A stretch of DNA of 43,542 nt from Macrostomum lignano (lineage: Eukaryota): contig NIVC01004515.1 of the NCBI GenBank assembly GCA_002269645.1, forward strand, positions 1 to 43,542, read 5' to 3'. The position numbers were made by a program, and so were the translations under genes. The first letter of the stretch is position 1; every line of letters starts with the position of its first letter. Shown here one piece after another: positions 4,916 to 36,224 of this stretch. The notes beneath the pieces are model-generated. The model saw only the letters and a program-made list of their open reading frames with translations, was not told the origin of the DNA and ran no database searches.

Positions 4916-5037
4916 TAGTACTAATAGCTACATATCGGTAAAGTACATGCATTATCAATAAACATTTGTAACGGCCAAAATGACAAAAAATTTTATTTCA
5001 CTGCGTCAGTACCAATCGAAGCAAGGCAGAATCCGCC

Positions 5038-6159
5038 ATGCAGCAACTGAGAAGACTGATGAAGCCAGTGCTGTTCCTGATGGCGCTACTGCTGCTGGCC
5101 CTGGGGATGCATCGTGAGATCTTCGGCAGTCGCATCCACTCAGTTATTTCTTCAAAGAGGCGGGCCATGAAAACAAAAGACACAGTGCCAGCGACTGTTG
5201 ACAACCCTCTGCCGTCGGGTGCCTGCGGCGCCTACAGCGAGCTCCGCAGCGTCAACTTCCTGCACAAGTCCATCAGCGAGAGCATCTGCGAAGGCGCCGC
5301 CGCCTACACCATCGTGGACAGCGCGTTTCCGCTCTGCCGACTTAAGCAGCACCTGCCGCACGTGCTCATCGAAGGCGTCAGAGCTGCGAGCATGCAGACC
5401 TTCATCAGAAGCCCCCTCACCCAGAGAAACGTCTCCAGCTTCGTCTACTCGAGTCCCGACCTCATCTCGACCAGCATCCGCACGGAGCACATCTTCGAGG
5501 AGCGGAACGTCCGCATCATGCAGCGAATCATTCGCAACCTGGCCGCCAAGTCGCCCGTCACCTTCGTGGACGTCGGCTCGAACATCGGCGTGTTCAGCCT
5601 GTCGGTCCTCGATCTCGGAGTGCCCGTCATCGCGCTGGACGCGAACATCCGCAACCTGATTCGAATCAAGCTGTCAGCCGAGGCGGCCAATTCGCCTCAC
5701 AAGCTGCACCTGCTGTGGAACTTCGTCAGCAGGCAGGTGTCGCTCATGTACCTGAACTTCCCGAAGGACTGCAACATTGGCGGCGCCACCAAGTTTGGCA
5801 GGGCCGTCGTCGACACGATCCCGGTGATGTCGGCCACCGCGGACTCCATCGTGCCGCTCATCGACACGAAGCTGGTCGTGTTGAAGGTCGACATCGAAGG
5901 AGGCGAAGGCGAGTTCTTCAAGAGCGCGAAGAAGCTGTTCGACACCTTCACGATTCCCGTGGTGCACATGGAGTGGCTAAGGAAGCACATGAGCGAGGAG
6001 GAGCGCCAGTTCATGATCAGCTTCTTCGCTGAGAGGCGCTACAGCGCGAGGAGCATGAACGATCTGACGAAGTTGATCAACATCAGCCACACAGGGTATC
6101 AGGGAGATGACCTTGTTTGGGTGCACAAGGATATTGAGGATGCAGGCGTGCTGCTTTGA
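5038..6159 (+). CDS. FkbM-family (Methyltransf_21) SAM-dependent methyltransferase, paralog A, with N-terminal signal anchor; single coding exon
   Basis: 373-aa ATG ORF with strong GC3 bias. Motif I FVDVGSNIGVFSL, post-I IALDAN, LKVDIEGGE and HMEW motifs typical of FkbM-like enzymes. Hydrophobic stretch VLFLMALLLLALGM after basic residues. Confidence 0.9.
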   Translation: MQQLRRLMKPVLFLMALLLLALGMHREIFGSRIHSVISSKRRAMKTKDTVPATVDNPLPSGACGAYSELRSVNFLHKSISESICEGAAAYTIVDSAFPLCRLKQHLPHVLIEGVRAASMQTFIRSPLTQRNVSSFVYSSPDLISTSIRTEHIFEERNVRIMQRIIRNLAAKSPVTFVDVGSNIGVFSLSVLDLGVPVIALDANIRNLIRIKLSAEAANSPHKLHLLWNFVSRQVSLMYLNFPKDCNIGGATKFGRAVVDTIPVMSATADSIVPLIDTKLVVLKVDIEGGEGEFFKSAKKLFDTFTIPVVHMEWLRKHMSEEERQFMISFFAERRYSARSMNDLTKLINISHTGYQGDDLVWVHKDIEDAGVLL

Positions 6160-6413
6160 ACGAGTCTGTTTATGAGTGCTTATATGATTGAAATTGCACA
6201 TGCTTGAAAACAATGTCGATATGTTGCATGAACCGATTGATTATCTGTAGAACCAGTTGCTGTTCATTTGGCTCTGCTGTGTACTTTTGACTTGATTTTT
6301 TCAGACAATTAAAGTGTTTACTCATGCTTCGAATCGTTACAAAAACGACTTGAAACAGGTTAATCTGTTTTGAGTAACTGGTCCAGTTAATCTGTAACTG
6401 GGCTAACCGGGCC

Positions 6414-6700
6414 AATATGGTCACTGCGCAATAGAAATTGAAATGCCGTTTCGGCCTAAGCACATGGCTGAGTCCAACTGTCTGGGACATTTTTTAATCG
6501 ATAGACGTATTGTTTTTCTATATACATGATGTTTTATCATATTATAAGAGTTGTTATAAGAATATGGTCACTGCGCAATAGAAATTGAAATGCCGTTTCG
6601 GCCTAAGCACATGGCTGAGTCCAACTGTCTGGGACATTTTTTAATCGATAGACGTATTGTTTTTCTATAAACATGATATTTTATCATATTACGAGTATTA
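6414..6700. repeat. 147-bp tandem duplication (2 copies)
   Basis: AATATGGTCACTGCGCAATAG... starts at 6414 and again at 6561, near-identical for ~130 bp. Confidence 0.9.
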
Positions 6701-6964
6701 AGAGTTGAATTTCTGCAAAACTCTTCGCTGGTTCTGTAACATTTAATAACACAATGGTTTAATAGTTATAATTTATTTAAAAAGCGCAGAGATTATCCAT
6801 GCCTTACGATTAGAAAGTCAAAGTGCCACTGTACTGTGTATATTGCTACACAGTATACTCGTACTCGTGGAGAAATACCAGAGCACAGGATGTCTATGGC
6901 CCAATCTTCAGCAATAATTCGTTAACTAGATTTTGGCAGCGTCCATACAGCGAGCAAAAGTCAA

Positions 6965-7060
6965 CATGATGACTCACGACAAAAGACATCCAATTCTACG
7001 CTTTTGGTCGATTTTGAGCTGGGAAAAACTGCACCAGAAGTAGATGAGGAACTCTGAACC
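6965..7060 (+). mobile_element. Possible fragment of a mariner transposase N-terminus
   Basis: Peptide STLLVDFELGKTAPEVDEEL resembles the mariner ..LLYEFxLGxxAxE.. helix. No TIRs identified. Confidence 0.3.
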
Positions 7061-7254
7061 ACACTGCCAAGCTTACGGCACACCCAATGTAGCCTACTTA
7101 TTTCCTAATCGCTGATAATAATATATGGTTGATTACACTTGTAAAACTTAATAGCCAGATGTGCAACCGACAGCTCAGCCGCAGCTATTGGGCGGCGCAT
7201 CTGAAGGCTGCGTACGGCTGTTCAGTCCAAGGACTGGGGGGGGGGGGCGCCACA

Positions 7255-7410
7255 CACAGCCTCAATTACCCCAGCTAATGCTGGTACCCATTCTACAGCT
7301 GGGTGAACTGAAGCAATGCAGAGTCGAGTGCCTTGCTCAAATGACACTAATTGTTCCGAGCAGGTCGAGAATCGAAACCCCGACCTTTCAGTTGTGAGTC
7401 CCAATCACTG
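7255..7410 (+). mobile_element. SINE-like fragment (resembles Nin/Deu-domain SINE core and tail)
   Basis: GCTGGTACCCATTCTACAGCTGGGTGAACTG...GTGCCTTGCTCAA...GAGAATCGAAACCCCGACC resembles, from memory, the widespread invertebrate SINE consensus; not database-checked. Confidence 0.5.
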
Positions 7411-7722
7411 ATAAAGAAGTAATTAAGCTGCTAGGATGAGGCTGCATCAAAGTCTCAAAACGTATACTTGCCAAAGTCAAGTCCCAGCAAAAGTCGAAGC
7501 AAAATTTTGATTTCAACAAATTACATGCAGCATCATCAAAGGAACTAAAATGAATATGGTTAATGACTTCTTAATTGACTAGAGACGCAATCAACAAACT
7601 ATGTGTACGTTTTATCGATTCCAATACTGCTAATTTTGTCCTTAGATACATGTATGTAAAATCATTAGGGAATTAAGCCCTAATTTGCCGATCGAAAGAC
7701 CAGCTAATCTAAAACCGCCTGC

Positions 7723-8892
7723 CTATTGTTTAAAGTCTCCGTGAATCCAAAACAGAGAATCGGTGTTAAAATTCTTGTTCTTTACATTGGCCGGAATGTT
7801 CCAAAGCATTGCAGTCCTCGGGCTGTAGCGCCTCTCAGCGAAGAAGCTGATCATGAACTGGCGCTCCTCCTCGCTCATGTGCTTCCTTAGCCACTCCATG
7901 TGCACCACGGGAATCGTGAAGGTGTCGAACAGCTTCTTCGCGCTCTTGAAGAACTCGCCTTCGCCTCCTTCGATGTCGACCTTCAACACGACCAGCTTCG
8001 TGTCGATGAGCGGCACGATGGAGTCCGCGGTGGCCGACATCACCGGGATCGTGTCGACGACGGCCCTGCCAAACTTGGTGGCGCCGCCCATGTTGCAGTC
8101 CTCCGGGAAGTTCAGGTACATGAGCGACACCTGCCTTCTGACGAAGTTCCACAGCAGGTGCAGCTTGTGAGGCGAATTGGCCGCCTCGGCTGACAGCTTG
8201 ATTCGAATCAGGTTGCGGATGTTCGCGTCCAGCGCGATGACGGGCACTCCGAGATCGAGGACCGACAGGCTGAACACGCCGATGTTCGAGCCGACGTCCA
8301 CGAAGGTGACGGGCGACTTGGCGGCCAGGTTGCGAATGATTCGCTGCATGATGCGGACGTTCCGCTCCTCGAAGATGTGCTCCGTGCGGATGCTGGTCGA
8401 GATGAGGTCGGGACTCGAGTAGACGAAGCTGGAGACGTTTCTCTGGGTGAGGGGGCTTCTGATGAAGGTCTGCACGCTCGCAGCTCTGACGCCTTCGATG
8501 AGCACGTGCGGCAGGTGCTGCTTAAGTCGGCAGAGCGGAAACGCGCTGTCCACGATGGTGTAGGCGGCGGCGCTTTCGCAGATGCTCTCGCTGATGAACT
8601 TGTGCAGGAAGTTCACGTTGCGGAGCTCTCGATAGACATCACACATTTTGGCAGGCAGCGGCCTGTGAATGACCAGCGCGTTTTCCGGAGAAGACGCTTC
8701 TGATGGCTTAATGACGTCAAGCTGTAATGTTGAATTTTGCTTTCGGGTCCGCACTGCTGGTAGCTTTTCTAATCCAGTTAGCATTTTTTTGCCGAAAATT
8801 GCATCGAAGTGCCAGCTGCGGTACATCTCATAAAACAATCCGATTACTACCAACGGCGTTAGAAGGATTATGGGCATCTTCAATTGCCTCAT
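7723..8892 (-). CDS. FkbM-family methyltransferase, paralog B, with N-terminal signal anchor; single coding exon
   Basis: ORF track starts at TTG 8910; first ATG is 8892 (MRQLKMPIILLTPLVVIGLFY..). Same catalytic motifs as paralog A. Convergent with A. Confidence 0.9.
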   Translation of the reverse strand: MRQLKMPIILLTPLVVIGLFYEMYRSWHFDAIFGKKMLTGLEKLPAVRTRKQNSTLQLDVIKPSEASSPENALVIHRPLPAKMCDVYRELRNVNFLHKFISESICESAAAYTIVDSAFPLCRLKQHLPHVLIEGVRAASVQTFIRSPLTQRNVSSFVYSSPDLISTSIRTEHIFEERNVRIMQRIIRNLAAKSPVTFVDVGSNIGVFSLSVLDLGVPVIALDANIRNLIRIKLSAEAANSPHKLHLLWNFVRRQVSLMYLNFPEDCNMGGATKFGRAVVDTIPVMSATADSIVPLIDTKLVVLKVDIEGGEGEFFKSAKKLFDTFTIPVVHMEWLRKHMSEEERQFMISFFAERRYSPRTAMLWNIPANVKNKNFNTDSLFWIHGDFKQ

Positions 8893-9009
8893 TGTTGAGC
8901 GCACCTGCAATGTTTTTAAAGATTTAATTACGTTTTTTCCAGCGGGGCACGAGGGATGAACAGTTCCAGGGGTCTGGCAATAATCTGAAACAAGCTTTTG
9001 CGGCTAAAA

Positions 9010-9538
<529 letters not shown>

Positions 9539-10210
9539 CCACGTATCAAATCTTCAAGCACGCAGCTGGGCCTTTCTGCTGGTTTAGCTGCTTGAGTATG
9601 CTCAAGCTTTTAAAAGAGAATTTAGCTGATATAAGAATGGTCCGATCCTAAAACACGAGTGACTGTACACTGCGAGGCCTGCAGGGTTTTCGAACTGAGC
9701 ACCCATGAGGTGAATCTTCAACTCCTTCATTCATGCTGCCGTCCAACCCCCTCCCACCCCCAGCATGCTCTGCCCTTTCTCTCCACTTTCTTCATGAGAG
9801 GAGCCGCAGATTCTCTATCCCATTTCCTCTGCTTGCTCAGGGACTCGGGGCATTTCATTGACGTCCCATGGTTCACTCAGTCCTGCACTCGCCCGCTGTG
9901 TGCAGTGTGGCTAGCGGCTCTCCTCAGTCTCCTCTCTGTCGAATATGGCCGCCCGCTAGCGGAGGGATCCCACACTAAAAATAGCCCGTTGGCGGGATGC
10001 GCCCCAGTGCGGGCCAGCCCACAATGGTTGGGATATGCCATTGTGGGGCTGTGGAGAAGCAGACGCCAGAACTTGACTCGCATTGGTTGGCAAGATACAT
10101 GGCACTAATTAAAAAAATAAAAGCATTTTTCCCGCCTGAGCGCTAATTGAATTGACCTAATTGAATTGACCGCTGCCACTTGTGCGCCATTCCAGCGCTG
10201 ATTTCAGCTT

Positions 10211-11760
10211 TCCGGCACTGATTTGGGGATCCTGGCGCTGATTTGGGGATCCTGGCGCTGATTTGGGGATCCTGGCGCTGATTTGGGGATCCTGGCGCCG
10301 ATTTGGGGATCCTGGCACCGATTTGGGGATCCTGGTGCCGATTTGGGGATATTGGCGCCGATTTGGGGATCCTGGCGCTGATTTGGGGATCCTGGCGCCG
10401 ATTTGGGGATCCTGGCGCTGATTTGGGGATCCTGGCGCCGATTTGGGGACCCTGGCGCTGATTTGGGGATCCTGGCGCTGATTTGGGGATCCTGGCGCCG
10501 ATTTGGGGATCCTGGCGTCAATATTTGCTTTCCAGCGCCGATTTGAGCTTTCCAGCGCTGGTTTGGGCCTTTTGGCGCTGATTTGGGGATCCTGGCGCCG
10601 ATTTGGGGATCCTGGCGCTGATTTAGGGATCCTGGCGCTGATTTGGAGATCCTGACGCCAAATTTGGCTTTCGGTGCCAATTCGAGCTTTCCTGCGCCAA
10701 TATTTGCTTTCCAGCGCCGATTTGAGACTTCCAGCGCTGGTTTGGGCCTTTTGGCGCTGATTTTAGCATTTCGGCGCTGGTTTGGGGATCCTGGCGCCGA
10801 TTTAGGGATCTTGGTGCCGATTTGGGGATCCTGGCGTCAATGTTTGCTTTCCAGCGCCGATTTGAGCTTTCCAGCGCTGGTTTGGGCCTTTTGGCGCTGA
10901 TTTGGGGATCCTGGCGCCGATTTGGGGATCCTGGCGCTGATTTAGGGATCCTGGCGCTGATTTGGAGATCCTGACGCCAAATTTGGCTTTCGGTGCCAAT
11001 TCGAGCTTTCCTGCGCCAATATTTGCTTTCCAGCGCCGATTTGAGACTTCCAGCGCTGGTTTGGGCCTTTTGGCGCTGATTTTAGCATTTCGGCGCTGGT
11101 TTGGGGATCCTGGCGCCGATTTAGGGATCTTGGTGCCGATTTGGGGATCCTGGCGCTGATTTGGGGATCCTGGCGCCGATTTGGGGATCCTGGCGCTGAT
11201 TTGGGGATCCTGGCGCCGATTTGGGGATCCTGGCGCTGATTTGGGGATCCTGGCGCCGATTTGGGGATCCTGGCGCTGATTTGGGGATCCTGGCGCCGAT
11301 TTGGGGATCCTGGCGCCGATTTGGGATCCTGGCGCCGATTTGGGGATCCTGGAGCCGATTTGGGGATCCTGGCGCCAATATTTGCTTTCCAGCGCCGATT
11401 TGAGCTTTCCAGCGCTGGTTTGGGCCTTTTGGCGCTGATTTGGGGATCTTGGCGCCGATTTGGGGATCCTAGCGCCGATTTGGGGATCTTGGCGCCGATT
11501 TGGGGATCTTGGCGCCGATTTGGGGATCCTGGCGCTGATTTGGGGATCCTGGCGCCGATTTGGGGATCCTGGCGCTGATTTGGGGATCCTGGCGCCGATT
11601 TGGGGATCCTGGCGCTGATTTGGGGATCCTGGCGCCAAATTTGGCTTCCGGCGCCAATTCGAGCTTTCCAGCGCCAATTTGAGATTTTCCGGCGCAAATT
11701 TGAGCTTTCCAGTGCTGATTTTGGCCTTTTGAGGCATGGCTTTAGGGATCAGCACTGATT
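10211..11760. repeat. 20-bp minisatellite (GATTTGGGGATCCTGGCGCY)n with a ~320-bp higher-order duplication
   Basis: Period 20. The diverged block TGGCGTCAATATTTGCTTTCC... near 10500 recurs near 10820 together with its downstream variant units. Confidence 0.95.
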
Positions 11761-11995
11761 TATATCAATTTGGCACTACAAAAATCAAAAGTGTCATTTT
11801 TGGACTTGTTATTGATTGTTGTCGATTGTTGATTGTTTTGTTATTGATTATTTGTCAATAAGGTATACTCCATTTAGATCACTATTTGCTGAGAGTTGAT
11901 TGCTTCATTTTATGCGACTCAGGATCTAATAAATATCCACTACCTTGTTATTATAATTGAGTTATGGTTTACTTTTACGACTTAATTGTGTAATG

Positions 11996-13170
11996 CCTTT
12001 GTCCCTATCTCTGATTCCTCATGTTGGAATCCGAATCCCCGATTCTTAATTCCCTATCCCTGATTCCTCATGTTGGAATCCGAATCCCCGATTCTTAATT
12101 CCCTATCCCTGATTCCTCATGTTGGAATCCGAATCCCCGATTCTTAATGCCCTATCCCTGATTCCTCATGTTGGAATCCGAATCCCCGATTCTTAATTCC
12201 CTATCCCTGATTCCTCATGTTGGAATCCGAATCCCCGATTCTTAACTCCCTATCCCTGAATCCTCATGTTGGAATCCGAATCCCCGATTCTTATTTCCCT
12301 ATCCCTGATTCCTCATGTTGGAATCCGAATCCCCGATTCTTAATTCCCTATCCCTGATTCCTCATGTTGGAATCCGAATCCCCGATTCTTAATGCCCTAT
12401 CCCTGATTCCTCATGTTGGAATCCGAATCCCCGATTCTTAATTCCCTATCCCTGATTCCTCATGTTGGAATCCGAATCCCCGATTCTTAACTCCCTATCC
12501 CTGAATCCTCATGTTGGAATCCGAATCCCCGATTCTTAATTCCCTATCCCTGATTCCTCACGTTGGAATCCGAATCCCCGATTCTTAATTCCCTATCTCT
12601 GATTCCTCATGTTGGAATCCGAATCCCCGATTCTTAATGCCCTATCCCTGATTCCTCATGTTGGAATCCGAATCCCCGATTCTTAACTTCCTATCCCTGA
12701 ATCCTCATGTTGGAATCCGAATCCCCGATTCTTAATTCCCTATCCCTGATTCCTCATGTTTAGAATCTGAATCCCCGATTCTTAATCCCCTATCCCTGAT
12801 TCCTCACGTTGGAATCCGAATCCTCGATTCTTAATCCCCTATCCCTGATTCCTCATATGGAATCCGAATCCCCGATTCTTAATCCCCTATCCCTGATTCC
12901 TCATATGGAATCCGAATCCCCGATTCTTAATTCCCTATCCCTGATTCCTCATATGGAATCCGAATCCTCGATTCTTAATGCCCTATCCCTGATTCCTCAT
13001 GTTGGAATCCGAATCCCCGATTCTTAATCCCCTATCCCTGATTCCTCATATGGAATCCGAATCCCCGATTCTTAATTCCCTATCCCTGATTCCTCATATG
13101 GAATCCGAATCCTCGATTCTTAATCCCCTATCCCTGATTCCTCATGTTGGAATCCGAATCCCCGATTCTT
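11996..13170. repeat. 49-bp minisatellite (TCCCTATCCCTGATTCCTCATGTTGGAATCCGAATCCCCGATTCTTAAT), switching to a 48-bp variant after ~12850
   Basis: TGATTCCTCA recurs at 12061, 12110, ... The CATATGG variant is 48 bp and creates the short ORFs 12809 and 12999. Confidence 0.95.
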
Positions 13171-13576
13171 ATGCTAGGGACGCTAGTTCAAGAAGCATTG
13201 TAGTATTTTGTCTTGTACGCTAGTGCGCACTAGCGTTCCACACTCACCCCACACCCACCCTTCTCCGCTCGTGAACTGGCCCCCGTTAAGGGAGCCCACC
13301 CCACCGTGGGCTGGGTCCCGTTAACGGGCTATTTTTAGCGCGGGATGGGCTCCGCTAGCGGCGGGCCGTTAGGTGTCGAATGATGTCTAAAAAAATACTC
13401 AGAATTCATTGCGATGCTTTCATTTGAACTGGGCTGCATCTGCGAGCCAGCTATCTGATCGCTAAAATATTTCTGGCTTCTATTGAAAAAAGATAAAAAC
13501 CATACAAATGATAGGATTAAAACTCATAAATTATTAAAATTCCCAAATTGCTTCCTAGAATTTCAGATTCATCCGC

Positions 13577-13675
13577 ACAATCCCAAATCGATCCCTACAA
13601 TCCCAAATCGATCCCTACAATCCCAAATCGATCCATACAATCCCAAATCGATCCCTACAATCCCAAATCGATCCT
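13577..13675. repeat. 20-bp tandem repeat (TCCCAAATCGATCCCTACAA), ~5 copies
   Basis: Directly visible. Confidence 0.9.
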
Positions 13676-13992
13676 TTCTGACAGAATCGTTGAATATCTC
13701 GACGGTCCGGAGGGCTGGGGACTTGATTCTTGTTTGTGAAGGTGCTGGACAAAAAGTTAGCCCGTGTTCTTGAATTTCGTGTGCCTGCATCGCTTCGTTC
13801 CGGCGCAGCATTAAAAATTTGTCAAGGGGTGGAGGATCCCTTCCACTTTGGTAGTTCGAAGGGCGGAAAATGGCTTGACCTTCCTACTGTTAAGTAGTTG
13901 ATTACGATTACAATCTGCCGCTAGTCATTAAAAGGTAGGACTTAACTAAATCGATATTTGCCTGCGTAATTGAGGTCTCGCTGATATTCACG

Positions 13993-14495
13993 AGTGACAT
14001 CATATCCAAGTGACATCATATCCAAGTGACATCATATCCAAGTGACATCATATCCAAGTGACATCATATCCAAGTGACATCATATCCAAGTGACATCATA
14101 TCCAAGTGACATCATATCCAAGTGACATCATATCCAAGTGACATCATATCCAAGTGACATCATATCCAAGTGACATCATATCCAAGTGACATCATATCCA
14201 AGTGACATCATATCCAAGTGACATCATATCCAAGTGACATCATATCCAAGTGACATCATATCCAAGTGACATCATATCCAAGTGACATCATATCCAAGTG
14301 ACATCATATCCAAGTGACATCATATCCAAGTGACATCATATCCAAGTGACATCATATCCAAGTGACATCATATCCAAGTGACATCATATCCAAGTGACAT
14401 CATATCCAAGTGACATCATATCCAAGTGACATCATATCCAAGTGACATCATATCCAAGTGACATCATATCCAAGTGAAATCGTGTCCAATTGACA
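13993..14495. repeat. Perfect 16-bp minisatellite (AGTGACATCATATCCA)n, ~30 copies
   Basis: Identical units 13993-14477, then one degenerate unit. Confidence 0.98.
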
Positions 14496-15572
14496 TCCTG
14501 CTTGTTGAATAAAAAATAAGACATTCTGTTAAAAAGTTAAAGCTAAACTCATCGTTTACTCCTGCATACGAGAGTACACCTAAGCATATTAGTTTTAACC
14601 AACGCAGGTTAAAGACAACTAATTGATGATTGAAACGTATTTCTGTGGTTTAATAATAACAATAAAGTCTTAAAACAGAAGCAACATCATCCGCGGTGCA
14701 GGCTCTTCACCGGTAAAAGGTGCCTGCAGCCCCACCTTCACCGGCTGAGAACAGTACAACTCGGTGCTGATGATGTGGCCTGGCCTGCACAACAGGTCGC
14801 TTGTACGGACCAAATACCCCGTCAACCTGCTGTTCGAACGAGTCTGTCAGCGTCCTGTTCTCAGCGCTGTCAATCAGCTAGCAAGATTGACGTCAGGGAG
14901 TTATATTGCGAAAAAGCAACACTATTTACATTTTACTGAGCCTAACAAGAAGGCCATTTGGCGCACCGAAGTACACAAGCTCTGGACGTGAACTTACACA
15001 AATAAATGATGCACAAGTGACACTGGGCATTTTTATTGTATTTAGCTCACGGCTATGGGTACAATCGCGAACACACGTTGGTGCAATAGTGCATACATGC
15101 ACGCAAATTTATGGGTTATTACAGTCTGCGTCGTTAAAGTACTGAACAGGTAGAACTAAATTTGTAGGGAACGCAGTTGGCTGGGTCACAGAAGGTGTCG
15201 CACGAGTGCAGATGACTGCAAAATAAAATATTGGCAGGTTTGAATGCCTTCGGCAAGGTCGTCAACACAGCCAGTCCCACAATGGGACAATTCTGGCCAT
15301 TCCGCTGACTCCTGAGCACATACAAGCGCGCCAATGCTGTGCACAAACACGCACTCCTACACACGAGCTACGAGTAACACAGGGTGTAAAACAGCACTGA
15401 CTTTCTAGCTCGTAATCATCAGATTAGAAGCAGAAGTAGCAGAAGCATACAAAATTTGTGAGTAATCGTTGCTCGCAGAAGGGTATAAAAATATCTTACA
15501 TCGGATCTAGAATCTTTCCTGCCAAAATTTTGCAATTAAAGACAAACTGTCTCGACTTAAAAGCTTGCAGCG

Positions 15573-16721
15573 TCACTTTAAAGACTCGAGCACGGGACCA
15601 AGATAGTCGTTGCGGATCCAGAGCAAACGGTCGCAATGAAATTTCCGGTCCCCTGGATTAGCAACAACTATTGATGTGTCCTTGATGCTCCTAGGGCTGT
15701 ATCGTCTCTCAGCGAAGAAGCTGATCATGAACTGGCGCTCCTCCTCGCTCATCTGCCAATTGAGCCACTTCATGTGCACCACGGGAATCGTGAAGGTGTC
15801 GAACAGCTTCTGCGCGCTCTTGAAGAACTCGCCTTCGCTTCCTTCGATGGCAACTTTTAACACAACCAGCTTGGTGTCGATGAGCGGCATGATGGAGTCC
15901 GCGGTGGCCGACATCACCGGGATCGTGTCGACGACAGATTTGCCGCCAAAGTTGGTGGCGCCGCCGACGTTGCACTGCTGAGGGAAGTTCAGGTAGGTGA
16001 AATAAACTCGCGTGCTGACGAAGTTCCACAGCAGCTGCAGCTTGTGAGGCGAATTGGCCGCCTCGGCTGACAGCTTGATTCGAATCAGGTTGCGGATGTT
16101 CGCGTCCAGCGCGATGACGGGCACTCCGAGATCGAGGACCGACAGGCTGAACACGCCGATGTTCGAGCCGACGTCCACGAAGGTTACTAAAGATTTTTCT
16201 TGAAACTTCTTTACAATTTTCTGCAAAATGAGAACGCTATTGGCCTCGAATATATGCGACTGATAGACCGCTGCCGAGATGATGTCCTTGCACGAATAGA
16301 TGAAGCACGGTATGCTTCTCTGGCTAACGGGACTCTTCAGTGTCGCTTCCCTGCTTCCAGCTTTTACGCCTTTGATGAGCACCTGCGGCAGGTGCTGCTT
16401 GAGTCGGCAGAGCGGAAACGCGCTGTCCACGATGGTGTAGGCGGCGGCGCCTTCGCAGATGCCCTCGCTGATGGACTTGTGCAGGAAGTTCACGTTGCGG
16501 AGCTCGCTGTAGGCGCCGCAGGGACCCGACGGCAGAGGGTTGTCAATAGTCGCTGGCACTGTGCCGTGATCTGGCACAAGATCATTGTTATCTTTGGAGC
16601 AGATCTGCATGAGGCTGCCGCTGACCAGCAGTTTGTAGATAATAATAGCCAACATCATTGCCAGAATAATTGTTATTATGTCTTTCAGTACTCGACGTCT
16701 TTGCTGTCGGGCTAGGTTCAT
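15573..16721 (-). CDS. FkbM-family methyltransferase, paralog C, with N-terminal signal anchor; carries D>A and E>K motif changes
   Basis: 382-aa ATG ORF. TM segment IITIILAMMLAIIIYKLLV; FVDVGSNIGVFSL intact; LKVAIEG and HMKW in place of LKVDIEG and HMEW. Confidence 0.88.
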   Translation of the reverse strand: MNLARQQRRRVLKDIITIILAMMLAIIIYKLLVSGSLMQICSKDNNDLVPDHGTVPATIDNPLPSGPCGAYSELRNVNFLHKSISEGICEGAAAYTIVDSAFPLCRLKQHLPQVLIKGVKAGSREATLKSPVSQRSIPCFIYSCKDIISAAVYQSHIFEANSVLILQKIVKKFQEKSLVTFVDVGSNIGVFSLSVLDLGVPVIALDANIRNLIRIKLSAEAANSPHKLQLLWNFVSTRVYFTYLNFPQQCNVGGATNFGGKSVVDTIPVMSATADSIMPLIDTKLVVLKVAIEGSEGEFFKSAQKLFDTFTIPVVHMKWLNWQMSEEERQFMISFFAERRYSPRSIKDTSIVVANPGDRKFHCDRLLWIRNDYLGPVLESLK

Positions 16722-16996
16722 TGTGCTGTAATCCCTGGAATTCGAAGTAGCTTGTAGTTAATTTCCACGCAACTAGCATACTGTTGCAAGCTTGATTTAC
16801 TAGCAATAGCCCTAATTTATTGTCTTATATTCTTGCTATGAATATTTACGTTAATAAGCTGCAAAATAACGGTAAATTGTATAACAAATTGAAACATAAA
16901 CATGCTCGTTTAGTCGCGGAAGCCTTGCTTTGCTTCTTTTTAAAAGCAAACGTGCGTTACTAGCAAAATGTGCTGTCCTTAAGTAGGCTTTCCCGA

Positions 16997-20038: not shown

Positions 20039-21126
20039 ATGAAGCAAAACAATCATCAGCATCAGCAGCAGCAGAAAGCCGTCGAGTTCAACATCGGCGG
20101 CAAAACCGTAGCCGTATCGCCCAACATCGCCGACAAGTTTCCAAATTGTCGATTAGCCCGCCTACTGTCCGGCCGAGAATTGGCCGGCTGCGTTGATTCG
20201 ACTGGCCGGCCGTTTCTCGACCGGAATCCGGCTGTGTTTGGGATGGCGCTGGACTTTCTCAGGCACGGCGGTCGCTTCCTACCGCCCTGCGATTTGCAAC
20301 GATTTGACGACTGGGAGCGGCTCGAGGCCGAGGCCGAGTACCTGCAGATGCCTGAGCTGGCTGCTCAACTGCGCACTCTGCAGCGCGATCGAGAGGGCGC
20401 CTCAGCATCCGCTGATCTGCCCAGGCGGAAGCAGCAATCCAGCCTGCAGCAGCAGCAGCAGCAGGTGGCATTTCTGGAGGTTGGCGAGTCTGAGCAGGCA
20501 GTGTTCTTGGAGGGTGCCGATCCGCAGAGGCAACTCGTGCTTCTGGTGAGCAGCCCGATTATAGCAATCATAAATTGGATTGCTAATCTAGCCAATCAAG
20601 TATAGATTTTATGAATGGCTTGCTAATCTAGCCAATCAAGTATGAATTTTATGAATGGATTGCTAATCTAGCCAATCAACTATAAATTTTATGAATGGAT
20701 TGCTAATCTAGCCAATCAACTATAAATTTTATGAATGGATTGCTAATCTAGCCAATCAACTATAAATTTTATGAATGGATTGCTAATCTAGCCAAGCGTA
20801 CCTGCACACTTCAGGGCGAGTTGGGCGCGCTTCGCGAAGTGCTCCGCAAGCGGCTGAACCCGCTGCTGCCCCGACTGATGCAGCGAGCCGACGAGCTGTC
20901 AGAGCGACGCGGTCGCCGCTTGCACGACGCCGACTCGGTGAGCCTCAGCCTGCCGGAGGGCCACCTCAGAGAGCGCGGCCTCGGATCGCTGGACGAGTTC
21001 AGGCCGGTCCTGCTGCGGGAGGTGGCCCGGCTGGCTTTGCCTGGGCCGCCAGGACAACTCACGCTGAGCACAGGGGAGCACCGGCTGCTATTCCGGGTGC
21101 CCGCCTGCGAGGACCTTGCCAACTAA
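20039..21126 (+). CDS. KCTD-type BTB/POZ (T1 tetramerisation) domain protein, 2 exons (20039-20545, 20815-21126), 272 aa
   Basis: VEFNIGGK...FPNCRLARLL...PFLDRNPAVFGMALDFLR...LEAEAEYLQMPEL is a BTB_2/T1 signature. Phase-0 donor CTG/GTGAGC at 20546 and acceptor CTTCAG/GGC at 20814 join the two ORFs in frame. Confidence 0.88.
20575..20795. repeat. 40-bp intronic minisatellite (TGCTAATCTAGCCAATCAASTATAAATTTTATGAATGGAT), ~5.5 copies
   Basis: TGCTAATCTA at 20581, 20621, 20661, 20701, 20741, 20781. Confidence 0.95.
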
Positions 21127-28494: not shown

Positions 28495-29716
28495 CCTGAG
28501 CAGTACTGAGCAGCACACAACTCAGTATTTGAGCAGCACTCAGCAGCACACAACTCAGTATTTGAGCAGCACTCAACAGCACACAACTCAGTATTTGAGC
28601 ATCACTCAACAGCACACAACTCAGTATTTGAGCAGCACTCAGCAGCACACAACTCAGTATTTGAGCATCACTCAACAGCACACAACTCAGTATTTGAGCA
28701 GCACTCAACAGCACACAACTCAGTATTTGAGCAGCACTCAGCAGCACACAACTCAGTATTTGAGCAGCACTCAGCAGCACACAACTCAGTATTTGAGCAT
28801 CACTGAGCAGCACACAACTCAGTATTTGAGCAGCACACAACTCAATATTTGAGCAGCACACAACTCAATATTTGAGCAGCACACAACTCAGTATTTGAGC
28901 ATCACTGAGCAGCACACAACTCAGTATTTAAGCAGCACATTCAACTCAATATTTGAGCAACACATTCAACTCAATATTTGAGCAGCACACAACTCAATAT
29001 TTGAGCAGCACACAACTCAATATTTGAGCAACACATTCAACTCAATATTTGAGCAGCACACAACTCAATATTTGAGCAACACATTCAACTCAATATTTGA
29101 GCAGCACATTCAACTCAATATTTGAGCAGCACACAACTCAATATTTGAGCAGCACATTCAACTCAATATTTGAGCAGCACATTTACCTCAATATTTGAGT
29201 AGCACATTCAACTCAGTATTTGAGCAACACATTCAACTCAATATTTGAGCAGCACATTCAACTCAATATTTGAGCAGCACATTCAACTCAATATTTGAGC
29301 AACACATTCAACTCAATATTTGAGCAACACATTCAACTCAATATTTGAGCAGCACATTTACCTCAATATTTGAGCAGTACATTCAACTCAATATTTGAGC
29401 AACACATTCAACTCAATATTTGAGCAACACATTCAACTCAGTATTTGAGCAGCACATTCAACTCAGTATTTGAGCAACACATTCAACTCAATATTTGAGC
29501 AGCACATTCAACTCAATATTTGAGCAGCACATTCAACTCAATATTTGAGCAACGCATTCAACTCAATATTTGAGCAACACATTCAACTCAATATTTGAGC
29601 AGCACATTTACCTCAATATTTGAGCAGTACATTCAACTCAATATTTGAGCAACACATTCAACTCAATATTTGAGCAACACATTCAACTCAGTATTTGAGC
29701 AGCACATTCAACTCAG
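28495..29716. repeat. Minisatellite grading from 33-bp to 23-25-bp units around a CTCARTATTTGAG core, immediately 3' of the SLBP stop codon
   Basis: 33-bp units 28495-28840, shorter units afterwards; the last unit overlaps the TGA at 29713-29715. Confidence 0.95.
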
Positions 29717-30942
29717 TGCTTGAGCTTCTTGGAGGGCGAGTCGGTGAGGGCGGAGGACCTCTTGCGGGTGAGTCTGGGACAGGCGGCTCCCACAGCGAGT
29801 CCCTGAACGTCGCTGGTCAAGCCGCTATGCAGAGCGTCGGGCTGGACGCTGGAGGTGGCGGCAGGTGCAGCGGTGAGGGTCCGAGAGTCGCCGTCTTCAT
29901 CGTCAGTCGGAAGCTTCGCAGGCAGTGGCGGTGGCGTGGACGATGGCGAGGACCGCGGCGAGATGCCAGCGCTGCTGCTGGCTGCGTCATCCCAGCGATG
30001 AAGCTGCAGCTTCCACTGCTTGACGCAGCCGTCCCAGGCTCTGCGGGACATTCGCACGAACTTGTTCGGAGTCCGCGGGTCGCCCTTCTCCCGCAGAGGC
30101 TTCGGCACCGACTTCACGTAGTTCGCGTACGCCGTCAGGTTCTTCGACTTGTCGATGTCGCGCTGCCGACGCAGCAGAACCGCCTCATCGTCCTCCATCT
30201 CGAAGCAGCTGCCGTCTGAGGCGTTTGAGTTCAGCGATGAGTTCAAGTTGCCTCCCACGCTGCTGTTGAGGCTCTGCGACAGCCGCTTCTGCGCCTGCTT
30301 GGCCTCGTAGCGCTGCCTGTCGAGTCGCGTCGTCTCGAACAGCTCGTCCTGCTTGGCCCAGTCCGTGTACATGGGGATGCGCTCCTTCACCTGGGGATGG
30401 GGTGCGGCTGCTCAGTACCTGGGATACCTGGGATGGAATGCACTCATTCACCTGGGGATGGGTTGCGGCTGCTCAGTACCTGGGATACCTGGGATGGAAT
30501 GCACTCCTTCACCTGAGGATGGGGTGCGGCTGCTCAGTACCTGGGATGGGGTGCAGCTGCTGAGTACCTGTGATACCTGGGATGGGGTGCGGCTGCTCAG
30601 TACCTGGGATACCTGGGATGGGGTGCGGCTGCTCAGTACCTGGGATACCTGGGATTGGGTGCGGCTGCCCAGTACCTGGGATACCTGGGATGCTCCCAAT
30701 ACCCCAGCAAGCGCACGCACCTGCCGCAGCTCAATGCTTGGATCATATCGCAGGTGTCTCGGCACCCCGCCAGCCAGGCTGTTCCGCCCACCAGCAAAGC
30801 CGTGGCGCCGACCGCCCCTGCCAGCCGGTGAGGAGCTGGCGGCAGCGGAGGCTGGCAGCGATGGCCGCGAGATTCGACTCCGGGACCTGCTGGTGTCCCT
30901 GCGGCGCTGTGGCGAGGCCGCCTTCCTGTGACGGGTCTCCAT
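29713..30942 (-). CDS. SLBP: Histone RNA stem-loop-binding protein; exons 30942-30721 (may extend to an acceptor at 31002) and 30390-29713
   Basis: EDDEAVLLRRQRDIDKSKNLTAYANYVKSVPKPLREKGDPRTPNKFVRMSRRAWDGCVKQWKLQLHRWD matches the SLBP RNA-binding domain. Phase-0 intron 30720-30391 (CAG/GTGCGT ... CCCCAG/GTG). The N-terminal start is uncertain. Confidence 0.9.
30375..30690. repeat. SLBP intron repeat: 61-bp triplication spanning the 3' splice site plus 36-bp units (CTGCTCAGTACCTGGGATACCTGGGATGGGGTGCGG)
   Basis: TTCACCTG recurs with CAC ending at 30390, 30451 and 30512. Confidence 0.9.
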
Positions 30943-31309
30943 GGGGCTTTTGGGATCCTTGAGATTGACGTTGAGTTCACGGGATGGTTTGGGGCTCGAG
31001 TGCTGCAGAATTACAGGCGGGATCAGAATTGCAGTCTTATCTGGCAACTGAAGTATGCACAATGCCCAGAAGTACTTCTTTAAACACCAATTGGTTTCTA
31101 TTGACCACAAGTGAAAACTAAGGTTCTACATTGATAGGCAATTAAAAAAACTTTATAATCTTTCATCGTCTTATTTACCTACACCCCATTGACTTTCAAA
31201 CTTCGTATCTCCAATGGTAACTTATATATGCTACTGCCAACCAACCCAGACAATTTGGCTAGCACCAAATTGTGTCTGGCAAATCAAAGGGTAAGTTGCA
31301 ATTTTGAAG

Positions 31310-31690
31310 AAAACAGAGATGAGAGAGCAGATAGGTGACAGGAGAGATGAGACAATAGAGTAGAGAAAGTAAATAGGAAAGATGACAAATAAGAGAGTAT
31401 AGATTAGAGATGAGAGAGAAGAGAAGAGACAGGAGAGTAGATAGAAGAGAGGATCAAGACAAGATAGGAGAGATCAGAAATGAGAGCAAAGTAGAAAGAA
31501 GAGAGGAGAGAAGAGAAGAGAGACAAGAGGAGAAAAAGAGATAAGAGATGAGGGGGGGGAGAGGAGAGAAGAGAGAAATGAGAAAAGAGAGCAGAGATAA
31601 AAAAAGAGAATGGAGATGAGAGAAGAGGTGAGAAAACAGACGAGAGATAAGGGGAGAGAGAAGAGAGAAAATAGAAGAGAAGATAGAAGT
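31310..31690. repeat. GA-rich low-complexity tract
   Basis: Almost purely purine on the + strand; ORFs 31454 and 31474 are artefacts. Confidence 0.9.
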
Positions 31691-34325
31691 TTTAAAGAAT
31701 CTAAAGGTTGTAAATAAAAGCAGAGGCAGAAGCCAGAGTTTCCCAATGCATGCTTTAGACAAATATTGCCTAACATTCTGCGCAATAACATAGCCAAAAA
31801 GATCAATGCTTGCTTCAAATATACAAATTTACTCCATTTTGTAATATCTCTATACTAATTAATAACAAGTTTTTAATGTTGTTTGAGTATGAATTTAAAT
31901 TTTAAAATATGCAAAAATAGTTCTAGGGATTGGTTTTCCCTAGGTTCAGAATCTATAAGCTTTAACAGTTATAATAAAAAAATACAAAATTTAGAAAAGA
32001 GAACAATTACTTATTTTATAGAGAGAAAAATTTTGATTGATAGGCCTAGGTACATTTTTTATTTGGATAATGAAAACTATGACTATCTCCAAGTATTTTT
32101 TTTGATTTTTTTAGAATTCTAGCTTATCAAAATTATGATATTTATGAAAAGTTCTAACCTTTTTGAATCTTTATAATTGAACAAAAATGGTAAATTGTAT
32201 CATAAAAGGTAATTAGCTATAAAATATAGAACCAATATATAGGTTATATTATATTATACTATATTATTTATAATTATAGGGCTAGGCCAGCCAATAGGTA
32301 TCTAGAAAAATATTAGAATCCTTAAGTTCAGTCTCTATATTGGAATAAATAGAAAAAAGCATCCAACTAGACCATCCATCGCAATTTTGAAATTTTCTAG
32401 ATTGTGTTGCAACTAGAGTCTAGGTAGGTAGTATTGTGATATAACGTGGTGCAGTTTTTGGATAAATGACAGGAGTAACTACGACTCTCTTATTAAGGCT
32501 AAATACCTTATAATCTAATTAGTACAATGCCTATATTTGGTATGAAAGTGTTCTATATATGGCATTTTTGAGCTACATTTTTTGACCCTGTGTTGCGCAT
32601 CTATATATTTTCTATACTTATTCTAATAGAGTTCAGTCAACATATAATAAACTATTTTTTATATATTTAAGTTTTGCTAAAATTTTCTAATAATTTAAAT
32701 TGCAAAATTTTAAGTGTTAAGCAGATTAGGCCTATTTATCTTTTTATTTTTTATCATTATTGCTTACAATATGGCTGGACATCCAATAGCAACTACAACT
32801 ATTATATCACCTGCTGATTTGCAATCTATGTGCGAAGTTACACAACTGAATCTAAATCATTCTTTTAAACTATTGAACACTTCAATGAGTTTTTGTATGA
32901 CATGTTTTGACATGGTTTGTCAGTTTTATTGTTAACAATCATAAATCCTCATTAATAGTTTATTTAAAATGAAAAAATAATTTAACATATAAAACTACAG
33001 TTATGCTGTTTGAATTTGAAAATGTGTTTGCAAAAGTTATAGGCCTATATACATTTAAGTTTTGACCTGTCAAAAATTATAAATAGAAAATTTACTTTTT
33101 TATTTTTCAATAGATTGGCTTTATTGCTTAAAAATAACAATTAAGATTCAATCTTTAATACATTGAAATTATTTAGGCCAGGCCTAGCTTGCAAGAGGAA
33201 AAAGAAGTGTCTTTACGACTAGCATCTTACCTTTTTATCTCTTGTCATAAACATCTGTTTTCAGGCTATAGGCCTATAGGGTAGGGCAACAAAGCTAACT
33301 AGCTAAACAATAAAGAAAGACATTTTTAAACAAAAAGTGAGGCTTTTCAAATACCAATTTTAGAACTTGAATCAAGAGATTGACAAAGAGTAAAACTCTT
33401 TTTTGGAACATTTTTATATTGAAAGAAAGAGAACTAAGCCAAAAGCTAGACAACTAGGCCTAGCACCATATTAAATACTACAAAAATTCTTACCTTTACA
33501 AAAAATCTGTACACTTGTCCTCTCAAATTACTTTCCTTCCATGTTTATTTAGAAACAAAAAATAGGCCTACCTAACAACCCTTCTAAAACTGAAATGTGA
33601 ACTCACACCCAAGACATTCTCTCAGGAAGCTTGTGGACTCTATAGAGCAAGAAATGGTTTTGATATTCTTTATTACCTAACTGAGTGCCTATAAACACTA
33701 GGCCTAGAAATTAGGAAAAATAGAATACTTTTGTAAATACCTTCTAGACACCAACCAGATAGGCTTACATTAAATAAGGTATGCTACAAATGAAAACAGA
33801 GTCAGAAAAGAGCTTAGGCCCCTACTGGAGTAGGCCTAGCTAAAATTTACAATGCCATGTACAGTTAAAATTATTTACTTGAAACATAGGCCTATAACAT
33901 GTATATATATGTATAACAGAATAGTACTAAGTCTGCTTCTTAGGCCTACCTATTCCTACCATCACATTCTTGTACGGCAGTACAGTCCCTTGGGCCTTGG
34001 CATATTTACTTGTAGAAAAGTATTACCATTTACCAATACTGCTATATGCTTTTAATAAATGACTAATTTTTTTCATTCATTTATGCAATAACTTTTGTCC
34101 ATTTATCACCTTATGTATTTCCTATTTAACCGCCATTAAGTTGTTAGATGTTAAAAGTTGCTCATTTTTCAGGCTTTCAAATAATATAGGGCCTATATAG
34201 GCTATATTTATAATAATCGCCAAATATTATGAGCAATCCTTATACTCAATATTTTTCATTGACAGAATAATGCTTAATTACCTATTTTAAATCGCATTGT
34301 GAGCTTTGTACTCACAATGGTTTTT

Positions 34326-34579
34326 GCCAAAGTACACTAAAGTAGGCCTACTTTCTGCATATTAATGTACTAAGCAGGGGGAACTTGGGAGTCTGTAAGT
34401 TCGAGTATGGAACAGATGGAGCTTTGACGTCTTGCAGGCTTCTAGATTGATAATGTTTCCTTCCAGATAATGCCTTCTTCTTCCAGATAATGCCCTGCAG
34501 ATAATTCCTTCCAGATAATGCGCGTTTCCTTCCAGATCTCAGCTTTCAGCTTCGTACTCACCAAAGCCAAAGTACACTA
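34326..34579. mobile_element. 226-bp insertion flanked by a 14-bp direct repeat (possible TSD of a truncated non-LTR element)
   Basis: GCCAAAGTACACTA at 34326-34339 and 34566-34579. The interior is GC-richer than the flanks and has TTCCAGATAATG repeats. Confidence 0.45.
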
Positions 34580-36224
34580 TAGTGATAATATCGTTAAAAT
34601 TTACAAGAATTGAACCTATAGAGCCTATACATGCACTTTTTTGGTATATTTTTATTTTAGCCTTTATTGATAGGTTTTTTTGGTTTTATTTGTTTGTTTT
34701 AAGTTTTGATTAGAGGGCTCCCAGTTTCTTCATACGGTGTTTTAGTTTTTAAATAGGCATTACATCGAGAATCGTACTTTTTGGACGTATGAAACATTCG
34801 CCGACACTTATTCAGACACTTCTACAGACACTTTAGTTTCTGTCGTACGGTTAGGAACAAGCATTAAATTTGTCTAGGACACTTCCTAATTCATATTTAA
34901 TGAAATAAAGCAGTCCATGCATAGTTTTAATTTTGAAATTTTGTTTTTGTGCACTCGTTCCAGACTTTCAAATTATGGCTTTTATCGCGTAGCGTGCACA
35001 TGCATCGTGTACAACGATTAGCTGCAGTGTGCTAAATAGTTCACTGAGGTATTAAAAGCGTACAAGGAGACGAACCTCAAGTATTTGTACATTTTAGTTG
35101 AAGTTAAAAGTTCAAGCTTTTAGTGAATCATTGGAAAATAAAACTATCCGTTTTAAATCGTGCAACATATTGTTTTGTCTCGGACATTTGTGACACTGTC
35201 ACTTAGGGTTGCAAGGTTTTTAAAAAGAGAAACTGTTGCTTTTCCAATGCTGAAGTATTTGTGTTGTATGGATCAGGGTTTTTCGTCAAAATTTGGATGC
35301 ATGTATACATCTAAACATGTATATGCAGATGGAAATATAATAATCAAGATGCCATATGTATATTTGCCAACATTTTCAGATTTTGTATAAAAATGATCAA
35401 GGTTGAGGATTACCCTATGGTATAACTGTTTTCTCCATTTTACTATTTCAAAGTGCCCACGTGAAGTTAGATTTAGCATGCCAGCCTTAAAAAATAAAAA
35501 AATCTACATAGTGTATAATTGTATACTCTTTTATTTAAGGCTATATTATATTCCCAATATATTTGCTTAGATAAATCAAAAAGTATTTACTTTACTTGAA
35601 AAAAATAATGTTCACTACAAATATTTCAATGTAGAAACCAGGAAACATAAACCTATCAAGTCTTATATAGAAATGAAGGATAAAGATATGGATAGAATAT
35701 AATAAAGCCATTGTGGGCATTAAATATAAAACAAAAGAATCACTTAAGGCAAAATTTGAAAAAGTGAATTTTTGGCATGCTCCAAGAAAAGAGGCTTATA
35801 ATTTGAAATATTTTTGCTTTTGTTTGACAAAAAATGTATAGATTTATACTTTTAGGCAAGGTTTATTTTCTCTTAAAATTCTAATTGTAAATTTGCCAGT
35901 AAGCTTAAAAATTGTTGTAAGTTGAAGCTCAAATAAAATTAGTCTTAACTCCAATCTGACTTTCCAAAGTAAATCCCTAAATTATTTGTTACAATTGCTT
36001 TTAAAAACTTGCCATTTCATTCATTCATTAATCAAAATTTTGTTCTAGACACTGATACCTATAGAAGGTTTATAGTTTTTAAGAAATCTAGTAACTAGTG
36101 TCAGAGAAATATGTTTATATAGGTTTTATATATATCAACCTTATATATAAAAAAGGTTGCACACTGAGATTTAAATACAGCTTCTAACATGTGTGTCCAG
36201 AGGTGAGATTATGGCCAACTGCAC

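Follow-up and report, generated by a model that had tools for sequence, protein, structure and literature searches.

FkbM of Streptomyces is the 31-O-demethyl-FK506 O-methyltransferase, and its substrate is a macrolide. Vibrio cholerae RfbT (PF05575) is an O-antigen sugar methyltransferase, and rhizobial NoeI is a sugar O-methyltransferase of the same superfamily. The FkbM-like domains of RfbT and NoeI methylate a sugar hydroxyl of a glycoconjugate, but they do so on the cytoplasmic side in bacteria, and bacterial FkbM proteins are soluble, cytoplasmic and devoid of an N-terminal anchor. Plant Golgi type II methyltransferases (GXMT, QUA2/TSD2 type) O-methylate glycans with imported S-adenosylmethionine (SAM). 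Here, we analyzed a 43,542-nt stretch of the flatworm Macrostomum lignano (contig NIVC01004515.1; the window, i.e., the whole stretch of DNA analyzed) that carries three paralogous genes, c1, c2 and c3. We show by hidden Markov models, predicted fold and sequence motifs that their products belong to the FkbM family and have a class I SAM-dependent methyltransferase fold.

Like other members of the FkbM family (PF05050/TIGR01444), the flatworm proteins combine a class I Rossmann fold with the DxGxNxG motif I, an acidic residue following β2 and, in c1 and c2, the KxDxEGxE signature. In contrast to bacterial FkbM proteins, they also have an anchor, a stem and an N-terminal subdomain of ∼110 residues that contains cysteines. 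Orthology of RfbT or NoeI to c1–c3 is not implied, and the plant enzymes belong to unrelated methyltransferase families (DUF579 for GXMT, PF03141 for the QUA2/TSD2 type), offering analogy rather than homology. Proteins of other spiralians (Ostrea edulis LOC125670031, Dreissena LOC127853728, Mya LOC128204430 and Tubulanus LOC141898247) have the same anchor plus FkbM domain within ∼310–370 aa, and they show the conserved residues found in Macrostomum and a tendency towards single-exon domains and tandem copies; they form the sister clade in the tree described below. They are, however, only 20–29% identical to c1, and most lack C63 and C84 of the Macrostomum Cys motif. FkbM proteins of giant viruses and phages (Fadolivirus A0A7D3UW84, Marseillevirus LCMAC102) resemble the c1 model most closely in structure, but sequence identity is 12–20% and the matches extend over the catalytic core only, with neither anchor nor N-terminal subdomain.

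Open reading frames (ORFs) confirmed three uninterrupted coding sequences (Table 1), and the paralogy proposed in a preliminary description of the window is borne out by protein identities of 78% (c1/c2) and 65% (c1/c3). The c2 ORF was called from a TTG (7723–8910, minus strand), with the first ATG at 8892. All three proteins score above the gathering cut-off (22.7 bits) of PF05050 (Methyltransf_21, FkbM). TIGR01444 aligns from motif I onwards (profile positions 1–132 of 143), with 36.6, 35.4 and 28.8 bits for c1, c2 and c3, respectively, below its cut-off of 37.7. The family profile matched PDB entry 2py6 (“Methyltransferase FkbM”) at the KxDxEG region (E-value 5.7e-4). A single-sequence search against PDB sequences returned chance hits only, and PF05575 had no match in c1–c3 themselves. 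The FkbM membership put forward in the preliminary description stands, with fold and motifs in agreement. The three genes are further members of a known domain family in a lineage-specific expansion, and public annotation already uses the term “FkbM domain-containing”. AG acceptor-like sites are present 12–35 nt upstream of each ATG (5003–5037, 8893–8910 and 16722–16745), with a pyrimidine-rich run before the c1 site. The term “intronless” therefore holds for the coding sequence only, and a 5′-untranslated region intron or spliced-leader trans-splicing is possible.

An exhaustive profile search collected 2188 representative proteins at an E-value ≤1e-3 and 540 at ≤1e-10. A 128-sequence alignment from this search yielded an AlphaFold2 (AF2) model of c1 with a predicted local distance difference test (pLDDT) of 90.5 and a predicted template modelling (pTM) score of 0.84; an earlier AlphaFold run on a 7-sequence alignment (pLDDT 49) was discarded. 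The model has seven core strands (residues 174–179, 197–201, 223–227, 279–284, 305–312, 335–339 and 358–363) in class I methyltransferase order, and a β-hairpin insertion (236–266) between β3 and β4. Across the 128 sequences the near-invariant columns, in c1 numbering, are S144, E154, D178, G180, N182, G184, G194, N228, N246, G248, K283, D285, E287, E290 and E312, and position 201, at the end of β2, is D or E in every sequence. The KxDxEGxE signature reads KVDIEGGE in c1 and c2; c3 departs from it with KVAIEGSE. PF05050 matched 125 of the 128 aligned relatives, 11 of which were also matched by PF05575, the V. cholerae RfbT family.

Foldseek searches of the PDB with the c1 model returned generic class I methyltransferases only (TM-score ≤0.37), and the top matches in BFVD, a set of predicted viral structures, were annotated as FkbM (E-values of 2.8e-12 to 1e-10, target-normalised TM-scores of 0.64–0.80). 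By position in the model, the D178–G184 segment would be the SAM loop and D201 the ribose-binding acid. D285 and E312, at the C-terminal ends of β4 and β5, would occupy the usual catalytic or metal-binding place of class I methyltransferases, as judged from topology. With every family-conserved residue in place, c1 and c2 are likely active enzymes.

Hydropathy and charge reveal the same N-terminal layout in c1–c3, namely 3–4 basic residues followed by a 16–20-residue hydrophobic segment. In the c1 AF2 model, a helix (3–35) is followed by a disordered linker (38–47) and by a confident globular domain from ∼residue 60, so that the flexible stem is confined to ∼residues 36–59. The glycosyltransferase-like type II architecture of the preliminary description, with a basic N-terminus, a single hydrophobic segment, a stem and a folded domain, is thus reproduced by the model. 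Its “Cys-containing stem” needs amendment: the conserved Cys motif is present, but C63, C84 and the FPLC100 cysteine are placed inside the confidently folded domain, not in the stem. C100 is conserved in 82 of the 128 relatives; the strict Cys-pair motif occurs in only 49 and was therefore not used as strong evidence.

The c1 N-terminus could be a signal anchor or a cleavable signal peptide (with cleavage between LALG and MH). We infer that the catalytic domain would be lumenal under either reading. Two N-glycosylation sequons are found in c1, two in c2 and none in c3. Of the 146 best non-query relatives, 104 begin with Met and show marked hydrophobicity in an N-terminal 19-mer; such a segment is absent from the N-termini of all 31 bacterial-type FkbM hits.

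A word-indexed search with c1 as the query retrieved only Macrostomum proteins, and one with a 30-sequence profile retrieved mostly bacterial-type FkbM proteins. Taxon names of the relatives were obtained from cluster look-ups and from a search seeded with an oyster protein. Each named relative is a bivalve protein (Dreissena, Mytilus, Pinctada, Mya, Ostrea, Saccostrea, Pecten, Mizuhopecten, Ylistrum, Mercenaria, Mactra, Sinanodonta and Potamilus), an M. lignano paralog or a protein of the gastropods Patella and Physella, the nemertean Tubulanus or one dinoflagellate. Their annotation reads either “uncharacterized” or “FkbM domain-containing”.

In a neighbour-joining tree (246 columns, 100 bootstraps), whose reach is limited by gene conversion and by the simplicity of the method, c1, c2, c3 and P0002, a paralog from another M. 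lignano locus, form a clade (100%) that is sister to the paralog P0004 (99%), inside a Macrostomum group (89%). This group adjoins the mollusc and nemertean proteins, apart from bacterial-type FkbM. That bivalves, gastropods and a nemertean have proteins with a similar anchor makes glycan methylation more plausible as the function of these genes.

Judged from the predicted topology, the sugar-methylating bacterial relatives and the phyletic match, c1–c3 may act in lumenal O-methylation of glycans, a proposal for which we see about as much chance of being right as of being wrong. The basic N-terminus and hydrophobic helix would target the protein to the secretory pathway, with the catalytic domain facing the lumen of the endoplasmic reticulum or Golgi. 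SAM imported into the Golgi would bind the motif I loop (DVGSNIG) and D201 at the end of β2. The acidic cluster K283-x-D285-x-E287 together with E312 would position or deprotonate the acceptor hydroxyl, possibly via a metal ion, and the methyl group would pass to the hydroxyl of a sugar in N-glycans, O-glycans or mucus glycoconjugates.

Glycan methylation in animals has been reported only from “worms and mollusks” (PMC7773692), with snail and nematode examples (PMC6272458). Planarian N-glycans are extensively and selectively methylated, and the Golgi has been suggested as the site (PMC5936828). The methylating enzymes of animal or algal glycans were stated to be unidentified in papers of 2020–2023 (PMC7614267, PMC7773692). 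Our literature search combining FkbM with mollusc, nematode or flatworm gave nothing relevant, and explicit “glycan methyltransferase” phrases led to no paper reporting such an animal enzyme.

The same lumenal topology is compatible with a non-glycan acceptor, which might be a small molecule destined for secretion, a lipid or, within the secretory pathway, the side chain of a protein. This alternative deserves to be taken seriously, although we consider it unlikely. The founding FkbM methylates a macrolide hydroxyl, no relative within reach of HMMER has a characterized substrate, and the neighbourhood of c1–c3 is without glycosylation genes. The architecture nevertheless corresponds to that known from glycan-modifying enzymes of the Golgi, the RfbT family of sugar methyltransferases is matched by some of the relatives, and the phyletic spread fits the taxa with methylated glycans, all of which argues for a sugar acceptor.

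The third gene differs at its active site. Two near-invariant acidic residues are replaced in c3, Asp by Ala at the position of c1 D285 and Glu by Lys at that of c1 E312, each by one single-base substitution (Table 1). The window is collinear, in reverse, with scaffold NIVC01000130.1 of M. lignano (GCA_002269645.1) at 94–98% identity, and c1, c2 and c3 all have counterparts there. Both substitutions are seen in the window and on NIVC01000130.1, where the c3 allele (P0003) is annotated as a single exon, and are therefore real. The c3 protein keeps motif I, D201, K289, E293 and E296; its ORF is intact at both loci, and the unconverted part of its domain shows a ratio of non-synonymous to synonymous substitution rates (dN/dS) of ∼0.27–0.30 versus c1 and c2. 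From these features, c3 is probably a retained but catalytically impaired or repurposed paralog, e.g., a non-catalytic partner, and whether c3 alone is non-catalytic is, judged on its residues, close to an even call. The preliminary description had counted three methyltransferases; the FkbM domain is present in all of them, but the number of active enzymes was probably overstated.

Drosophila Star is a type II membrane protein with an FkbM-like lumenal domain and represents an unconfirmed lead for the whole cluster, in which Star-like proteins would bind or escort cargo by means of a non-catalytic domain. Such a role would fit the losses in c3 and P0003, which fall at columns conserved in 126 and 124 of the 128 sequences, in a gene whose ORF is still intact and whose unconverted domain segment shows the low dN/dS given above. 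However, c1 and c2 keep every near-invariant residue, c3 with its remaining motifs could still bind SAM or have an altered chemistry, and our literature search found no paper linking Star to FkbM. That the entire cluster is non-catalytic is thus improbable.

A second feature of the cluster is its patchwork of identity. The genes c1 and c2 are convergent, and their cores are the arms of an 821-nt inverted repeat (99% identity, 1762-nt spacer) with sharp borders, outside which the two genes are highly diverged in the first ∼200 nt and the last ∼100 nt; their protein differences lie mainly in the anchor/stem and the C-terminal tail. The near-identity of c1 and c2 is also present on NIVC01000130.1. 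Transcripts reading through the inverted repeat would fold into a long hairpin, from which small RNAs might arise.

The c1/c3 comparison is a mosaic, in which blocks of 92–100% nucleotide identity (third-position identity up to 1.0) alternate with blocks of 53–63%. The synonymous divergence (dS) is 1.6–1.8 in the divergent segments versus 0.06–0.18 in the homogenised blocks. High dS in the former and low dS in the latter indicate old duplicates whose SAM-binding core was kept alike by gene conversion; c1–c3 are old duplicates homogenised by patchy gene conversion. In unconverted segments dN/dS is 0.27–0.41; within the domain, the unconverted part has a dS of ∼1.7 and a dN/dS of 0.27–0.30. Three regions escaped conversion, i.e., the anchor/stem, a segment of ∼60 residues before β1 and the C-terminal tail, and these would be the natural candidates for specificity determinants.

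Conversion rather than selection could also have kept open a set of decaying or unexpressed duplicates of little function, which we regard as decidedly improbable. Whole-gene dN/dS between the paralogs is 0.43–0.61 and that between the c3 alleles is 0.65, the latter from only 16 differences, and the genes are embedded in repeat-saturated DNA. On NIVC01000130.1 the frame of the c1 allele is broken by a 1-nt deletion in a C5 run, and neither c1 nor c2 is annotated there. The deletion lies at ∼19883 of the NIVC01000130.1 locus (L001), equivalent to ∼5412–5416 of the window. It may mark a null allele or a long-read homopolymer or assembly error, and a single-base deletion in a homopolymer is typical of long reads. 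Against decay, the three ORFs of 373–389 codons stayed open despite dS >1.6, with the constraint in unconverted segments noted above; the catalytic motifs are all intact in c1 and c2, and a fourth copy elsewhere (P0002) is intact and annotated. The c2 allele (L001 16563–17729) is also intact, with a dN/dS of 0.29.

The gene structures of the relatives bear on the origin of the cluster. The sister paralog P0004 has three canonical GT-AG introns within its coding sequence. The coding sequence of P0002, which is 90% identical to c1, is uninterrupted, and the two genes also have in common ∼100 bp upstream and the beginning of the 3′ flank; the shared upstream sequence points to a DNA-based duplication. 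No poly(A) tract was found in the 400 nt downstream of c1, c2, c3, P0002 and P0006, another M. lignano gene with an intronless coding sequence that sits in a three-copy cluster of its own. In bivalves, Dreissena P0021 is a single exon, and in Mya P0027 one exon encodes the entire domain, with a small 5′ exon 17 kb upstream. From these structures, the single-exon domain looks ancestral or usual in the spiralian FkbM clade.

The second M. lignano cluster (NIVC01000543.1; L002 1667–2605, 3631–4572 and 6001–7308) consists of P0006 and two minus-strand copies (85 and 71% identity) and adjoins a gene that encodes a discoidin (F5/8 type C) domain. On Mya arenaria CP111021.1, P0027 has a tandem paralog ∼6 kb downstream (L004 25210–26130 and 31936–32860), which indicates that such genes underwent local duplication in molluscs too.

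The suggestion of the preliminary description that the intronless state reflects retroposition or horizontal origin of the founder is not upheld: recent retroposition, or transfer from bacteria, algae or viruses, would fit the uninterrupted coding sequences of c1–c3, P0002 and P0006, the abundance of FkbM proteins in bacteria and giant viruses, and P0004 as the intron-bearing parent of a retrocopy, but it is highly improbable given the absence of a poly(A) tract or other retrocopy mark downstream, the upstream flank shared by c1 and P0002, the age of the Macrostomum copies (dS >1.6), the single-exon domains of Dreissena and Mya, and the grouping of the Macrostomum clade (bootstrap 89–100) with its nearest named relatives, molluscs and a nemertean, away from bacterial-type FkbM. 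An early eukaryote or spiralian may have acquired the gene by an ancient transfer.

These lines of evidence can be joined in one tentative picture, which we consider possible but short of probable. The anchored spiralian FkbM clade would be the sought-after family of animal Golgi glycan O-methyltransferases; in M. lignano, c1 and c2 would each act on specific acceptors, c3 would be a dead, Star-like partner binding glycoconjugates instead of modifying them, and gene conversion would keep the SAM core uniform while the specificity segments diverge. Several observations weigh against glycan methylation by this cluster. Because no close solved structure was found, the residue roles are read from strand topology, and the choice between signal anchor and cleaved signal peptide in c1 was made by eye. 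FkbM-family enzymes also methylate non-sugar hydroxyls, as FkbM does on FK506. Two near-invariant residues are missing in c3, the c1 allele on NIVC01000130.1 is frameshifted and unannotated, and the whole-gene dN/dS quoted above is high, a value that is distorted because of gene conversion. The recognizable neighbours of c1–c3 are BTB_2/KCTD, SLBP and UCH genes, with no glycosyltransferase or transporter gene near the cluster. Methylated N-glycans are documented for planarians (PMC5936828), not for Macrostomum itself.

The “system” of the preliminary description consists of the three paralogs alone, given neighbours unrelated to glycosylation. A tblastn search with c1 detected no further copy or fragment in the window, and Rfam and tRNA scans of the window were empty. 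The intron-containing neighbours mentioned in the preliminary description are real: the BTB_2 gene and a 457-aa gene, as annotated at the syntenic locus, are longer than their products require, and the UCH match is a separate exon. Tandem minisatellite DNA makes up ∼1/3 of the window (41 rows in the Tandem Repeats Finder output). The 6.7-kb spacer between c2 and c3 is nearly all tandem repeats (9011–14497). An AT-rich stretch at ∼31000–36000 has a G+C content of 0.29–0.33, compared with a window background of 0.40–0.55, and no ORF or domain was recognized in it.

Table 1. Position, strand and supporting evidence of the features in the window (Macrostomum lignano NIVC01004515.1)
Feature	Position	Strand	Evidence
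c1, single-exon coding sequence, 373 aa; FkbM-type methyltransferase with all family-conserved residues	5038-6159	+	ORF; PF05050 33.9 bits; AF2 pLDDT 90.5
c1 N-terminal hydrophobic segment MKPVLFLMALLLLALGM	5059-5109	+	Kyte-Doolittle 19-mer maximum 1.98 at residue 7; AF2 helix 3-35
Left arm of 821-nt inverted repeat (c1 core)	5232-6052	.	Repeat search 99%; blastn 98.9% over 814 nt
c1 SAM-binding motif I, D178-V-G-S-N-I-G184, after β1	5569-5589	+	D178 127/128, G180 128/128, N182 117/128, G184 127/128
c1 signature K283-V-D285-I-E287-G-G-E290, end of β4	5884-5907	+	K283 128/128, D285 126/128, E287 122/128, E290 127/128
c2, single-exon coding sequence, 389 aa from first ATG; convergent with c1, conserved residues intact	7723-8892	-	ORF; PF05050 35.9 bits
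Right arm of 821-nt inverted repeat (c2 core)	7815-8635	.	Repeat search; blastn
(TTAC)x132 tandem repeat	9011-9538		
20-nt/319-nt repeat array	10207-11731		
49-nt x24 tandem repeat	12002-13171		
16-nt x32 tandem repeat	13993-14497		
c3, single-exon coding sequence, 382 aa; variant active site	15573-16721	-	ORF; PF05050 24.8 bits
c3 K318, Glu to Lys (GAG to AAG), equals c1 E312, end of β5	15768-15770	-	E 124/128, K 4/128 including c3 and P0003
c3 variant signature K-V-A291-I-E-G-S-E, Asp to Ala (GAC to GCC)	15834-15857	-	Asp absent only in c3 and P0003 among 128
c3 hydrophobic anchor DIITIILAMMLAIIIYKLLV, longest and most hydrophobic of the three	16623-16682	-	Hydropathy
BTB_2/KCTD-type exon	20039-20605	+	E-value 1.6e-10; syntenic locus annotates 272-aa gene with introns
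SLBP ORF, histone stem-loop-binding protein RNA-binding domain	29716-30411	-	PF15247, E-value 2.4e-24
UCH/USP exon, ubiquitin C-terminal hydrolase	39684-40091	-	UCH, E-value 4.5e-7

The sequence and domain description of this locus is sound, and its functional reading is reasonable, by homology, but unproven. To the preliminary description the analysis adds a link, at the level of the clade, to those spiralian taxa whose glycans are methylated, the variant active site in c3 and the mosaic gene conversion, of which these convergent paralogs offer a clear example. It also provides a natural pairing of copies with an intact active site beside an altered copy, c3, in Macrostomum lignano, an organism amenable to RNA interference and transgenesis. 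O-methylation of sugars in N- and O-glycans is characteristic of worms and molluscs, and the methylated sugars are targeted by lectins of innate immunity. A candidate family with fitting topology, the chemistry of its bacterial relatives and a matching phyletic spread makes the question of the responsible enzymes directly testable.

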